64,000 nucleotides of DNA. Source: Bugula neritina (lineage: Eukaryota; Animalia; Bryozoa). How positions within the stretch are numbered: the stretch's first letter is position 1; the number at the start of each line of letters is the position of its first letter. The notes under the pieces were generated by a model. It was not told the origin of the DNA and did not search any database. It saw nothing but the letters and a program-made list of their open reading frames with translations. The stretch lies in assembly GCA_964035545.1 (NCBI GenBank), contig OZ037768.1:6108741-6172740 (forward strand), read 5' to 3'. The position numbers were made by a program, and so were the translations under genes. Of the stretch, positions 3,301 to 21,300 are shown in pieces.

Positions 3301-6300
3301 GATTACATTTATTAATTGATAGTTGAAAATTCTGAAAGCTTGTTTTGTGAAGTAAAATTCCTTCATGATATTTGAGTTTTGAAGACCAAAAGAGTGGCTT
3401 AAAATGCAAAAAAATAATCGTATGCTAAAAGCTCTTGACTACCAGAGAGCTAGTACAGTTAATAATTTTTATACAGTCAACTTGTCTCTACATCTTTTCT
3501 CAGTGCTAAAGATTTTAATTAGTTTCAGAGACTAACTGGTTTTAACATAGCATAATTTGGTATGCTAAGCTGCAAGTATAATTAATGCCAGGATACAATA
3601 CTTTTTTATCTGGAAATTCATTTAATAATGACAGCCATTAACCATGAGGAAAAATCAGTGGCTGTGCTATTTCTAAAGTAGCACAGTTATTCTTAACAGA
3701 GAGTTTTGGGCTCATTACTAGGTTATAAGTTTGTCCCTCTTGACATTGACATTAGAGCTGAAACTGTATGGCTCTATATAATTATTATGATGTTATGCCA
3801 CGCTATGAATGAAATGGATCAATGATTTACATAGTAATTATGCTAAGCATTGCTACCTTTGTTGAGCAATGCTGTGTACGTGACTAGCTCAGGTATCCCA
3901 CCATAAGATAATATCTTTCATGGTCCCAAAAGCTCACGTTCTTTTGTGTATGCCAATATGGCCTTTATAAGCAGGAATAGCAAAAATGCTTCTTTTAGCT
4001 ACATATATAAGTTTTACTCATCATCATAGTTTTGTTAGTGTAATATTTTGCAGTTATATCAGTTATAGGGGTATACTAAGTACTAACTCAATATACTTCC
4101 TCTTCTTACAACAGCCCAGTTTTGCTAAGGCTCAGTTGATCAACAATTTCATGCTGATATTAATTCTCATAAGTTTACAATCTGCATGTTAATAAACCCA
4201 TTGCTGGTCTGTGATTATTTCTTTATTGCAGCTATTCAGCTACAATATATCTTCTTGTCGCCACCCTATATTGCTTGTACTCTGCTTACCTGTGTTGCCT
4301 TACCTGGCCTACCTTACCTTTTAGTAGCCTACAGATGATTATTTAGTATTTCTGTTAAATTTCAATTGTAATGTTGAGATATGGAACAAGTGACAATTTA
4401 TTAGTTTTTTCCCCTTAATTAATCGATAAATTTTAGAGTTGTCTTCCTTGGATATACAGTAAGTGTGAAAGGTGCTGGGTTGTTTAGCATGACGTACCTG
4501 GGGCTTTACTGATGGTTCAAATTGAGAATTGTTTTTGATAAAAGGAAGGCATCCTTGCCAAATTGCTACTGTTACATCTCTGAGCTGTGTAGTTTGAGGC
4601 ATAAGAAATGCACAACAGTAAAAAGTCCTTCAATAACAGAGTCTCACTAAATGCTTTTTTATCTGAAAAATTACTTAGTTAGTTCAAATTCTACTGTATA
4701 CTTTTTATGTTTATTTGTTTTGTGCAAATCAAAAATTGGTGTTATGGTCAATTTACACTTGAAACATTATTCACTATAAAAAATGTGCAGAGCTGAGTCC
4801 AAGCTTAATTATTTCATATTTTCTCTTTCACATTCTAAAATAAATGAATTTCAAGGCTAACTCGACCATTTCTGTTTATTTTATTGGCTCATCTGCTAGC
4901 TCTTCGGCAAATCAAACCCTAGATGCCCATAATTTTATTTTTGTAGTCTGAATCATGGTATTAGCTTTGGAGTTTTCACACCTTTGATTTGTATCTAGAT
5001 TAAATCCAGATTGTTTAATGGTGTTGTGAAAATAATTTATAAATTAGCTTTTATTGTTTATTAAATTTCTTTATATGCCGTATTCCATAGACAGCTATAA
5101 TTTCAAGCAAAATTTTTTAGAGGGAATATCAACGAAGTCAATTTTTTAAGAAAATTAACTTTGTGTTGTTTAGATTGGGATGAATCAACTCCACTCATTG
5201 ACAGCGGAAGTATTAGAATAGAAAATAAAAGTAATGCACTCCATGAGTTTCTAAATGCCATAAATCCAATAAGTAAAGAAGAGTGGAAGGAAAAGAAATG
5301 GTATGGAAAAGCCTATCTTGTCATTAAGGTAAATCTTTGAAGTTTGCAAATTTGAAATCAGCGGTCTTCCTATGGAATTTTTTTCAGGAAATGACTATTT
5401 TATTGAAAAATTATTTAAAATGATTATTATTATGTTTTTGTAAAATGAAAACCCCTGTAAGAACCTGTACCTTGCTAGCAGCATGTCATTTGCAGCCATT
5501 TGAACTGGTACTCTTCCTGGCCCCAACAGTGAGCAACGATTCTGTTGGGTGGTTAATTTACTGGTCTACCAAAATAAGTTCCTGGTATTACAGTAATTTT
5601 CTTCATCTATTAATGATATTTATGTATACAGCACCTGTGTATTTTTTAATTGACACAAAATAAATGAGAAAATTATAATAAAAAAAGAAGCTCTCCGTGG
5701 CGGGGAATCGAACCCCGGTCTCCCGCGTGACAGGCGGGGATACTTACCACTATACTACCACGGATTTGCTGATATGCGGAACAGTTATTAGCGTATTTGT
5801 TCATAAGAGTACAATGTTACGCTTGCGCAATCACGTTAGTAGACCAGCGGGCATTGGATTCTTTAATCGCTCTGATCTTTCAGCAAATCCGTGGTAGTAT
5901 AGTGGTAAGTATCCCCGCCTGTCACGCGGGAGACCGGGGTTCGATTCCCCGCCACGGAGAGCTTCTTTTTTATTTTTAAATAAAATTTCTTGAGTAAAAA
6001 GTCCTTTTCAAGTGTTTTAATGAATAATTTTAGGCTCCCATTCAATTCATATTGACAATGACGTGTCCAGTAGTTGATTATGGTGCAGAGAAAGACAATT
6101 GGAATAGACATCTGTCTTGCTTCCAGGTTCTACTTGGGCCAATGTTTGCCCTATTTGCCACCAACCAATACGGTATGCCTACATCTTTCCATGCATAAAT
6201 CAAATTGCATTATGAGAGAATGTGCTAGAAAGATTTTCTTCTTGTGGCATATAAGTATTTATAATTTCCAACTAGACAGCTGTGGTCTATATAAGTATTC

Positions 6301-8711: not shown

Positions 8712-9467
8712 ATACTAAAATGAAGACATCATTGTTTCTAAAACATTTTATAACACATTGTATTCATTTAGATATGTTGAGCTATTGTCAGATCTAGCGG
8801 CCAAAAATTATATAAATGGTATAGAAAATTATATTTATGATCTATGTAATAGTAAATACTAATGTTTATTAAACAATGATTTTGTGTTTTTTAAAAATTT
8901 TAGGCTCAGTTTTAGAGCTTACCATTGATTTCTCAGGAATCGCGTCCAACAATATAAAATGATATTGCATCGTTTCTGATCACAAAACATAATTTATCAT
9001 AATAAAAATATTATTTGATTTTTCTTATGTTTATATAAAGTATACTTGGCATTCTCTTTTTAATTGCCTTCTAACTTGTTTTATAGCATATACTCATTTT
9101 GTTTGAGTTCTGTTAGATATGTGTTGGTAAATTTACTTGTATATACTTTATAAATTGTGTCAGTAAATAACTTTTTAAATAACATTATTGTGATTTGTTA
9201 TTTTTACATAATAGGTTATTTTCAGTAAAATAAATTAAATTGGTATCAAGTTGATATATTAAACTGTTTTAAAATCATTTAAATAATGCATGCGGATGGT
9301 CGTAAAAGTGAAATCATTCCTAATATTATGCAAAATTCATAACAAATTAGAGTCGATGTTGAAAAATGGAATGTCTCAATGTCTATAAACTCATATTTGG
9401 ACAATGTTTGTATTTTATCTTACTTGGTGTCGTTTATTCACACTTGTAGTGATGAGTTTACCCAGTA

Positions 9468-9540
9468 GTCCCCGTGGTGTAATGGCTAGCACATTTGCTT
9501 GCAAGCCAGAGGTCTTGGGTTCGATTGCCCAGTGGGGGCA
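9468..9540 (+). pseudogene. tRNA-like cassette in the 5' LTR
   Basis: A box TGGTGTAATGG, B box GGTTCGATT; acceptor, D and T arms fold; anticodon arm imperfect (TTGCAAG loop, Cys/Ala ambiguous). Confidence 0.6.
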
Positions 9541-9693
9541 ATTATTTTACAAGCTATTTCGGCATTTAGTGAAGTGTAGTAGTAGTGCACCGAGGAGTTG
9601 AGAGGCCAGGGGAGCCTGATGACTGAAGAAGTAGTAGACAGGCCAGTGGAGTTCAGAGAACTGGGTGGGATGTAGTGATGAGATTACCCAGTG

Positions 9694-9765
9694 GTCCCCG
9701 TGGTGTAATGGTTAGCACACTTGTTTGCAAGCCAAGGGTCTTGGGTTCGATTCCCAGTGGGGGCA
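9694..9765 (+). pseudogene. tRNA-like cassette in the 3' LTR
   Basis: 72 nt, GTCCCCG/TGGGGGC acceptor stem, A and B boxes intact, imperfect anticodon stem. Confidence 0.6.
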
Positions 9766-10079
9766 ATTGTTTTACAACACTGCACACACTAAATTTTACC
9801 CTGAATTTAGCTTCTCTTCCGTTATTATAATATTTAATTGCATGTTGGGCGTTGGAAAACTTAAACAGTTACTATAGATACATCAACAAAATTAAATTTA
9901 CCATGGTAACTTGCGCGAAAGTAAGCGACGTGGACTTATTTTCCCTTATAGTCTAAGGTTTTCGCCAATTAGTCAATATAGTCGCCCGACAAGCCTTCGG
10001 AATCCTACTATAAACAGGTTTTAAGATTTAGAGCGGAAAGAGTTACTACAAACTAAATAAATTGAGCTCGATTGTTATT

Positions 10080-18381: not shown

Positions 18382-21300
18382 AGCCTGATACTAAAATTAT
18401 TTGTATGTTTAATCTGATTTTTTATCAAAAATTTGAGTAGTTTGTCATCTAGTACTTTTATAACTATTTCATTGGCGTATAAGTTTTTACTTGATGCAGT
18501 TTCTCTTATGTTCTTTAGTTGTTACCCAAAAAAGGCTTTCCATTGATATTTCACCGAGTTGACGGTCGTGAGGAACAAGAAAAATCTAGCCCTTCATGGT
18601 TTAATCGTCTCGAGGTGATTGAAGTCATCAATTATGTTAAAAAACTAATTTTTGGACCTTCAAAAGTTGCACCTGAGGATATTGGAATAATCTCCCCATA
18701 CATTCAGCAGGTTGGTGGAACTACCTGAGCTATATTTATAATCAAGCAGATTTATTTATAGTACTCTGTAATAATATAGTGCTATATAATATATTACTGT
18801 ATAATATAGTACTGTGTAATATAGTACTGTATAATGTAGTACTGTATAATGTAGTGCTGTATAATATAGTACTGTATAATATATTACTGTGTAATATAGT
18901 ACTGTATAATATAGTACTGTGTAATATAGTACTGTGTAATATAGTACTGTGTAATATAGTACTGTGTAATATAGTACTGTGTAATATAGTACTGTATAAT
19001 ATAGTACTGTGTAATATAGTACTGTGTAATATAGTACTGAATAATATAGTACTGTGTAATATAGTACTGTGTAATATAGTACTGAACTGGTGTTGAGAGT
19101 GCTAGGATATCAAAATGTTTATACAAAATATTTAAATAATCTGACAGAACGTTGCCATCTTTTATTTGAAGTACAATTTTTGTTGTTTATTATTGTTTTA
19201 CGGAATTTGGCATGTGTAAATTAATTTTACTAATTTTTTGATAATTACAAGACACTCTAAGTTATTTGATTAAACTGAAATGCTAAAATCACCAGCTGTG
19301 AACAACACTGTCTGCACACTATTTGTTTTGTGAGCATACCATTACAAAACCTTACACGTTAACATATATATATATATAAATTTGATAGGTGAGAAAGATT
19401 AGGCAGGCTTTGAACGATGAAATCAGTGAAGAGGATTTGGCACAAATAGCTGCCCATACTGATGAGATAACTCTGGGGTCAGTTGAGAAGTTTCAGGGAA
19501 ATGAACGAAAAGTTATCATTTTGACCACTGTGAGAGGTGATGCCTCTAATTTTAAACAGGATGTGAAGTTCAATATTGGCTTCCTGAAGAGCCCAAAGGT
19601 GTGTGAAATCTCAAAGTAAAAACTAACTTTTACTTCCAATTGGTTTTTTTTGCTCTCATAGTATCTGTTCCAGTTCAATTTTACTTTTTTTGCAAGACTG
19701 TTATGATTTTAAAAACTTGCTAATCTTTCGAACATAAATTTTTTTAGGCATTTCATATAATTGTGATTTTTCAGGTGTTCTAAAGAAATTTCAAAGTAGT
19801 TTCTAAGGACTTGTGATTCTGGTATATCATACTTATTGGTCTTCACTTATCTGGAAGTGCAGTTGAACAGCTGTTATAATATACTTCATAATTTGATCTT
19901 TAATTCAAATTAGACTTGGATCTTTTTCTAGTTCAGTACTACTGGCTTATTCCGTAGCTGCTATGTGTTGTTCTTCCACCAGTTTGTCTTTCAGATAGAC
20001 TATATATGTAATAGCAGGATTTCTCAAGCTGGACCATGTTGTTACATTCCCATGTCATATTTGTTTCCTGTTTGTTTTCTTTCTTCCTGACCATGCCAGA
20101 TCTTTTTCTTCTTTTGAGACTTATTTATTGACTAGTCCTCTGCTCTGTGTACTGCAACTTCCTCCTCTCAATGTTTATTTGGAGCCCTTTCAAATCTTGC
20201 TATAGAAACTGTTCAATAAACAATTTCATTGCAAATAGTTGTATATAGTGAAGTAAAATGAAGCTTTACAATCTCCTAAAATAGTGTGAATTTAGCAAAA
20301 GTTTGGGTTGAAAATTACAGTTCTTACCTTTCATGAGAATTTTTTTTGTTACTTCTTGCAAAATTATCTACTTTACACAAAAGTGATATTATGAAGTTTC
20401 ATGAAGGCATGCCATAAGTTGCCTTGGCCTGGTATTTAATTATTATGGTTTAGAAATTTATGTTTCAGAGGTTTAATGTGGCCATCACCAGAGCAAAAGC
20501 CCTCCTCATAGTAATTGGTAATCCAATAATTCTCTGTACAGACGACAAGTGGAGGAGGTAGGTGCAGAACAGTTTACAAAATTAGTAGTTTTATTTGATA
20601 TTATAATTAGCATATACATTTATAATCTGTAATATTATACTGCAGGTAGACATTGCATCAGTTTTCTGGTTATGGATGGTATTCAATATGTATACGCATC
20701 TCTGAACATTTATATACGTGACTATTCAATATAATATATTCATCGCTATTCATCTTTTACTGCGTTGTAATAGCAGCTACAGCTATTGACTGTTCCAGAG
20801 TGTTACGCTTTGCTCACACTGCAAGGGGACAACACATAGCTATCTAGCTTGCAGTTGTTACCAACCTAATCTCTAAGTCAATAGAAATGCAGTGCAAATT
20901 TTTTGCTAAACTAAAGGCACCACTTTTAGCTGTAGTGTAAACTAGTCATTGGACTATTAACTTTTACAGCAAGTCTGGGCTTGGTTTGGTCATATTATAT
21001 GTTTTTATATATTGAGTTGAGAGAAACATTTACATCTGTGTCTCTGATACTACAGCCTGATAAGACATATTGTGTCTAATGGAGGTTACATTGGTGATCC
21101 GATTCCAGAGCAGCTGCTTGATGAGAGTGGAATTCGGCAACTAACAGAGGAGATGAATGGTGCTTCAATCAATGAAAGCTGTGAAGGTAACTTCCTAAGT
21201 TTCACATTCGTTTTATTATTAATTTTGTTCATAGTTGAAGTATAAACTCTGTTAGATACTTGAAGTATTTTATAGCTGGAATATAATTTTTTTAATATTT

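Follow-up and report, generated by a model that had tools for sequence, protein, structure and literature searches.

Both the RNA that primes reverse transcription and the mode by which it does so are defining traits of LTR retroelements and retroviruses. To our knowledge three priming modes have been described so far: by the 3' end of a host tRNA, by a half-tRNA cut in the anticodon loop and by self-priming. The last is the mode of Tf1 and Tf2, which, in the account that goes back to Levin in 1995, reportedly use the first 11 nt of their own transcript as primer. Among the TRIMs that carry a pol III module in their LTRs, the plant element Cassandra uses tRNA-iMet. TRIMs in which this module is derived from a tRNA were named Helenus and assigned to the class TRIMp3 (Kojima 2024, PMC10886601). 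Helenus elements of animals have 4-bp target duplications, Gypsy partners and primer sites for tRNA 3' ends (Lys, Leu, Trp, Arg, His and others), and those of fungi have 5-bp duplications, Copia partners and anticodon-loop sites, the duplications in plants being also of 5 bp (PMC10886601). The tRNA-like part of the Helenus LTR does not pair with the primer site (PMC10886601).

The window element and its family

The window, i.e. the whole 64,000-nt stretch of Bugula neritina DNA that was analysed, contains at positions 9445-9776 a genuine LTR element with TG..CA LTRs, a short interior and a perfect target duplication (Table 1). The element is 332 bp long, its two LTRs (107 and 106 nt) enclosing an interior of 119 nt, and has no coding capacity; its LTRs are 91.6% identical to each other and the copy is an old insertion. 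The LTR edge was fixed in two independent ways, namely by the direct repeat together with the ACACT duplication and by the limits of a 30-copy alignment. In this copy an A follows both LTRs, after the 3' LTR because the ACACT duplication begins with A, and the family alignment nonetheless places the edge at CA. An earlier note on this DNA had located the 12-mer AGCTATTTCGGC right after the CA that ends the 5' LTR, and the repeat, the duplication and the family alignment all confirm this position. The 12-mer is present only once in the whole window.

Both LTRs carry a tRNA-like module, of which the box B GGTTCGATT and the TTTT run are legible directly in the window sequence. This feature was absent from the earlier note, and it makes the locus an element of a published kind of TRIM; the window TRIM fits the Helenus/TRIMp3 definition. 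In most other copies of the family ARAGORN assigns a 2-nt "anticodon" to the tRNA-like part, which is therefore not a working tRNA. Elsewhere in the window, a divergent tRNA-Asp(GTC) pair (5693-5764 on the minus and 5888-5959 on the plus strand, each with 62.9 bits in Rfam) looks like real tRNA genes, unlike both "tRNA-Cys" calls. The window also holds a tandem array of a 15-nt unit at 18712-19146 (~29 units, ~90% identity).

The host genome, 216 Mb in 321 contigs, gave 1243 first-look candidates, and these include no fewer than 40 full-length TRIM copies with 85-92% identity. Thirty of them were aligned including the flanks, and edges, duplications and primer sites were counted in this alignment. 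Similarity ends exactly at TGTAG.. and ..TTTTACA, and the 5-bp target duplications are perfect in 17/30 copies and carry one mismatch in a further 9/30. LTR pairs within a copy are 83-100% identical, with two copies having identical LTRs; the family therefore includes old as well as fairly recent insertions. Copies share the 12-mer at LTR+1, a point on which the earlier note had asked for a check: it is exact in 20 of the 30, and the remainder carry one to three changes, several of them at CpG. Column agreement is 0.96 in the site against 0.93 in its surroundings (rank 58th of 321 twelve-base windows), a slight difference because most copies are decayed or dead, so that this count adds little. 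The family, with its LTR-interior junction, is represented in public contigs of the same organism whose libraries are labelled as RNA; in these contigs, which cannot show transcript ends and may reflect DNA carry-over, no position of 9552-9563 differs in 10% or more, whereas 9564 does. Pairs of 12-mers 219-465 nt apart on one strand (C1:19096214/19096442, C5:5015784/5016003 and C7:7830205/7830670) suggest tandem TRIM arrays (LTR-interior-LTR-interior-LTR), as in some Helenus families.

Table 1. Features of the window element, of autonomous families and of the primer site in relatives from other samples. Plain coordinates are window positions.
Feature	Location	Strand	Basis and remarks
Left 5-bp target-site duplication, ACACT	9440..9444	+	identical to 9777-9781
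5' LTR, 107 nt, TGTAG...TTTTACA	9445..9551	+	direct repeat of 9671-9776, ~91% identical; edges from 30-copy alignment
tRNA-like module in 5' LTR, pol III box A/B-like GGTGTAATGG / GGTTCGATT, then TTTT	9468..9540	+	ARAGORN tRNA-Cys(GCA); Rfam tRNA 34.4 bits
Putative primer-binding site AGCTATTTCGGC, complement of host tRNA-Phe(GAA) nt 1-12	9552..9563	+	sequence comparison
Remaining non-coding interior	9564..9649	+	mean column agreement 0.93 across copies; without reading frame
Short predicted hairpin AGTTC-AGA-GAACT immediately 5' of the polypurine tract	9650..9662	+	hairpin likewise placed in clade relatives
G-rich polypurine tract GGGTGGGA adjoining 3' LTR	9663..9670	+	column agreement 0.97, among the best-kept stretches of the TRIM family
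3' LTR, 106 nt	9671..9776	+	direct repeat and 30-copy alignment
tRNA-like module in 3' LTR	9694..9765	+	ARAGORN tRNA-Cys(GCA); Rfam tRNA 50.2 bits
Right target-site duplication, ACACT	9777..9781	+	identical to 9440-9444
Family C, autonomous	L056:1279-5585		4307 bp; 271-nt LTRs, 100% identical; duplication CTTGT; pol L056:2243-5278
Family A, autonomous	L058		~5.3 kb; 410-nt LTRs, 100% identical; duplication ATAAT; pol L058:2744-5965
Site AGCTATTTCGGC at LTR+1	L063, L189, L191, L193		
Site AGCTATCCCGGC at LTR+1	L062, L065		
Site AGCTATCGCGGC at LTR+1	L188, L190		
Site AGCTATCACGGC at LTR+1	L064		
Site AGCTATATCGGC at LTR+1	L066		
Site AGCTATCTAGGC at LTR+1	L192		

Primer site and host tRNA-Phe

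The host genome has five tRNA-Phe(GAA) genes starting with GCCGAAATAGCT (longer start, GCCGAAATAGCTCAGTTGGG), and the reverse complement of AGCTATTTCGGC is exactly nt 1-12 of the host's own tRNA-Phe (12/12). The match proposed in the earlier note is thus exact for this host. So is its claim that pairing ends at the LTR edge, since the next tRNA bases, CAG at nt 13-15, are not complementary to the ACA at which the LTR ends. The 12-mer has 126 occurrences in the genome, compared with 3 of the reversed control, and at least 34 of the 126 have TRIM-specific downstream bases; outside the elements, its reverse complement was located at the five tRNA-Phe genes. One lone 12-mer after CA (L060, C6:9810764), with neither an LTR pair nor pol nearby, was taken as chance or a remnant. 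Within 100 nt on either side of the site no further pairing of at least 7 nt with tRNA-Phe was found.

The site resembles neither of the two described types of host tRNA site. No TGG lies at or near LTR+1 and the sole match of at least 7 nt to tRNA-Phe plus CCA is nt 1-12, so the pairing that marks a canonical 3'-end site is missing; nor does the site pair with the anticodon stem-loop, as in copia and Ty5, pairing with tRNA-Phe being restricted to nt 1-12. The view of the earlier note that the mode would differ from both CCA-end and copia/Ty5 priming is supported. A full-text literature search, with most subscription journals and Repbase outside its coverage so that a prior description may exist, found no paper on a site complementary to a tRNA 5' end.

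Autonomous families sharing the site

Searching the host genome for the 12-mer behind CA without the TRIM T-run yielded three further groups, A, B and C, and in them the autonomous LTR elements with the same site for which the earlier note had suggested looking. Their LTR ends and downstream leaders are unrelated, all read ..ACA followed directly by AGCTATTTCGGC, and they share nothing else alignable with the TRIM in LTRs or leaders. Families A and C are each represented by a full copy with open gag (including a CCHC knuckle) and pol frames, and Pfam analysis of both pol products (L056 and L058) revealed protease, RVT_1, DUF7047, RNase H (PF13456/PF00075) and integrase (rve), in this order. 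The family B copy at hand (L057) is degenerate and without long frames; we infer an autonomous copy of this family solely from a search of the genome with the family C Pol. In this search the Pol proteins of families A, B and D were 43-49% identical to that of family C. Family D has about eleven open copies in the host genome, and in at least 8 of these the 12-mer lies, by coordinate matching only, exactly 744 nt upstream of pol.

The 12-mer is thus common to four autonomous families and the TRIM, and it stands at LTR+1 in families A, B and C, where the junction was read. Such identity, in the face of diverged Pol and, for A, B and C, of LTRs and leaders that cannot be aligned, requires either strong selection or a fresh copy of the tRNA sequence in each cycle. 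The RNase H of the clade is of the cellular/retroviral Pfam type (PF00075/PF13456) and not one of the RT_RNaseH domains usual in Ty3/gypsy, and among PDB structures its integrase is closest to retroviral integrases. DUF7047 was not mentioned in any paper found by the literature search. The partner clade consists of small (4.3-5.3 kb) elements of Ty3/gypsy order, as read from their domains, with four families in the host genome, and these four protein-coding families probably copy the TRIM in trans.

A chimeric element (L059, C5:8190478; L059:1319-5251 corresponds to C5:8190218-8194150) has a family-C-type 5' LTR, a TRIM-type 3' LTR and one perfect duplication, ATATG. Its parts follow each other as C-type 5' LTR, 12-mer, TRIM interior 1-86, a nested 3.4-kb element, TRIM interior 84-119 and TRIM-type 3' LTR. 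The nested LTR element (L059:1666-5109) is flanked by a 4-bp duplication of its own, ATAG, and its LTR is not immediately followed by TGG. A second copy of the chimeric locus, L047, arose by segmental duplication (flanks 94% identical), hence the chimera represents a single event. Two different LTRs would be expected if plus-strand strong-stop DNA of family C (U3-R-U5 with the copied primer) annealed through the shared 12 nt to the minus strand of a co-packaged TRIM. As a single event, the chimera argues for packaging of the TRIM with family C and for a role of the 12-mer in strand transfer.

At the other end of the interior, the autonomous elements have G-runs before the 3' LTR that are equivalent to the TRIM polypurine tract. 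Immediately upstream of the G-rich tract, a hairpin of 4-9 bp is predicted in 9 of the 10 clade elements that were folded (window 9650-9670; L056:5283-5314; L058, L062, L064-L066, L188, L191 and L193 before the 3' LTR), with stems that differ in sequence (TGATC/GATCA, TGAAC/GTTCA, TGATG/CATCA, AGCTT/AAGCT, GCAGCG/CGCTGC, AGTTC/GAACT). The exception is L064, where TGATG/CATCA pairing is nonetheless possible. This predicted hairpin may be a conserved signal for plus-strand priming. The global fold of one whole TRIM RNA was no better than that of shuffled sequences (z = 0.07).

Relatives in other samples and tRNA-Phe variants

Homologues of the family C Pol are very common in metagenome and Logan contigs (749 at E <= 1e-10, mostly on ~4 kb contigs), and one is annotated in the bryozoan Watersipora subatra. 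We read the LTR-leader junction in eleven relatives from other samples, whose Pol is, where listed, 41-57% identical to that of family C. In all eleven the corresponding position is occupied by the 12-mer or a variant of it (AGCTAT-TT/CC/CA/AT/CG-CGGC, plus AGCTATCTAGGC once; Table 1), with possibly two bases between LTR edge and site in L191, and those with both LTRs present end in ..ACA and have 5-bp duplications. Variation of the site is confined to the would-be tRNA positions 5-6 in ten of the eleven relatives, L192 differing also at position 4.

Metagenomes were scanned for tRNA-Phe-type genes with other bases at positions 5-6, using the pattern GCCGDKATAGCTCAGTTGGGAGAGC and excluding C at position 5 (the CG variant), with the CTA variant outside the scan. 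The three commonest sequences were tRNA-Phe(GAA) genes starting with GCCGTGATAGCT (33 identical copies), GCCGATATAGCT (15) and GCCGGGATAGCT (8). These are the exact complements of three of the four position 5-6 variant sites, the tRNA genes coming from other samples and not from the hosts of those relatives. The metagenome contigs also included very dense tRNA arrays (L072, L077 and L089; 33 tRNA genes in 4.6 kb in L072 and 12 in 1.8 kb in L089). In L068, L092, L105, L106, L113, L115, L135 and L141, tRNA-Phe-like heads (GCCGAGATAGCT...GAA anticodon arm) are followed by non-tRNA tails, and these repeats look like tRNA-Phe-derived SINEs.

Proposed mechanism and alternatives

We propose that the window element is a Helenus/TRIMp3-type TRIM which would be copied in trans by the DUF7047 clade, with minus-strand synthesis starting from nt 1-12 of tRNA-Phe(GAA), a reading to which we give a probability of roughly 0.7. 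At the level of sequence comparison, three things are established: the 12/12 complementarity bounded by the LTR edge on one side and by tRNA nt 1 on the other, the conservation across families, and the variation along tRNA-Phe variants. Priming by the tRNA 5' end, as the earlier note had suggested, is well supported by such comparison, in which the host tRNA, the TRIM copies, the autonomous families and the absence of a self-complement all speak for it. The chances are about even for a more specific version. In it, the element's own RNase H would cut tRNA-Phe where its 12-bp duplex with the element RNA ends and so set free nt 1-12, from which the clade and the TRIM would start; a Tf1-like cut would then be made in trans, and a widespread clade would use a fourth priming mode.

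In the proposed cycle, the zinc-knuckle protein encoded by gag would unwind the acceptor stem together with the first part of the D stem, and the site would pair with nt 1-12. A 3'-OH pointing into U5 would then come either from a cut between U12 and C13, which the element RNase H would make in trans by analogy with Tf1, or from the use of a pre-made 12-nt fragment, and from this 3'-OH DNA synthesis would proceed into U5. A 3'-OH at nt 12 needs a cut in the D stem, and we know of no tRNA-processing enzyme that makes one. Later, plus-strand strong-stop DNA would copy the 12-nt RNA up to its 5' end, and the 12-nt copy would mediate the second strand transfer. Such run-off copying would account both for the sharp limit of conservation at tRNA nt 1 and for the fixed site length of 12 nt.

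The 12-mer might instead be a true primer site for another small RNA ending in ...GCCGAAAUAGCU-3', such as a by-product of processing or an RNA transcribed from a tRNA-Phe-derived repeat. The constraint is limited to the first 12 nt, which any RNA with that 3' end fits, and tRNA-Phe-headed repeats with non-tRNA tails do occur in metagenomes. We nevertheless consider this unlikely, as the site varies in step with tRNA-Phe variants from other samples, the reverse complement in the host was located, outside the elements, at the five tRNA-Phe genes, and tRNA-Phe is abundant and universal. It is probable to the same small degree that the 12-mer serves some other purpose, such as packaging, dimerisation or the control of translation, by binding a protein or tRNA-Phe, with priming achieved otherwise. 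Retroelements use extra tRNA contacts outside the primer site, and no known enzyme cuts at the position proposed here. However, the U5 edge adjoins the 12-mer in every readable element but one (L191, with maybe two bases between), neither a TGG-type site nor a self-complement lies nearby, and the chimera is joined exactly at the 12-mer, as a strand-transfer site predicts. Both of these alternatives are disfavoured because the 3' end of the primer sets the U5 edge, and it is this edge that adjoins the 12-mer.

Self-priming of the Tf1 type, in which the site would pair with the 5' end of the element's own transcript before the cut, had been named in the earlier note as one of the outcomes that would overturn its proposal. 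The Tf1-like length of the site (12 against 11 nt), its position next to U5 and the Ty3/gypsy gene order would agree with it. We reject it as highly improbable, since the complement of the own site, at up to 3 mismatches, is absent from all seven LTRs examined (TRIM, families A and C, and four relatives), and the same site stands beside unrelated LTRs, which self-priming would not require. Finally, the tRNA genes predicted by ARAGORN and Rfam, two in number and separated by 226 nt, could be read as tandem tRNA-Cys genes with a chance 12-mer between them and no mobile element. This idea is refuted by the full copies, 40 or more, that are dispersed in the genome with 5-bp duplications of their own, by the defective tRNA-like part in most of them and by the 126 versus 3 occurrences of the 12-mer, the "tRNA-Cys" calls being TRIM LTRs.

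Priming from nt 1-12 of tRNA-Phe would have several consequences. A site for this part of the tRNA implies either a new tRNA cut or a very short 5' fragment as primer, and a different rule of re-copying in each cycle, in which the tRNA 5' end is the point of run-off. The mode of priming also determines where elements are vulnerable: they are silenced by 3' tRNA fragments of the host via the primer site, and the site described here is a possible target for 5' tRNA fragments in host defence. LTR-finding programs seek TGG-type sites and would score these elements as site-less, while tRNA-like LTRs inflate tRNA gene counts, as exemplified by the two "tRNA-Cys" calls in the window. With the window TRIM, the Helenus group also gains a family whose duplications are 5 bp long and whose partner clade is new.

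Comparison with known systems

With Helenus the window family shares short non-coding elements, TG..CA LTRs around a tRNA-like box A/B with a T-run, and many dispersed copies. It further shares a primer site after the 5' LTR (9552-9563), although of an unusual type, a polypurine tract before the 3' LTR (9663-9670) and a tRNA-like part that is neither a working tRNA nor paired with the primer site. It differs in its 5-bp duplications, compared with the 4 bp published for animals, in its partners from the DUF7047 clade and in a site that pairs with tRNA-Phe nt 1-12. Cassandra and Ajax likewise have a small-RNA pol III module in each LTR, which is 5S in these elements and tRNA-like in the window TRIM; for Ajax, a primer site for a tRNA 3' end is given as cited in PMC10886601.

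The half-tRNA priming of copia, Ty5 and fungal Copia elements resembles the proposed mode in that a 5'-derived piece of a tRNA, and not the CCA end, is the primer, and in that the site has no TGG. There, however, the cut lies in the anticodon loop (~nt 39), the site pairs with the anticodon stem-loop, the tRNA is mostly tRNA-iMet and the elements belong to the Copia superfamily, whereas here nt 1-12 of tRNA-Phe (the acceptor strand, nt 8-9 and the start of the D stem) would serve elements of the order PR-RT-RH-IN. Canonical priming by the 3' 18 nt of a tRNA has in common with it the host tRNA as source, a site adjoining U5 and a gag CCHC zinc knuckle, as is typical of nucleocapsid proteins that act as chaperones in the unwinding of primer tRNAs. 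The differences are the opposite end of the tRNA, a length of 12 instead of 18 nt, the requirement for a cut and the far boundary of the site, which here would be the tRNA 5' end and not a modified base. Tf1 and Tf2 share the very short primer (11 vs 12 nt), the site directly after U5, the Ty3/gypsy gene order and the requirement that RNA be cut endonucleolytically where an RNA-RNA duplex ends. They differ in that the paired RNA here is a host tRNA and no LTR holds the complement, so that the elements described here would use a trans version of the Tf1 mechanism.
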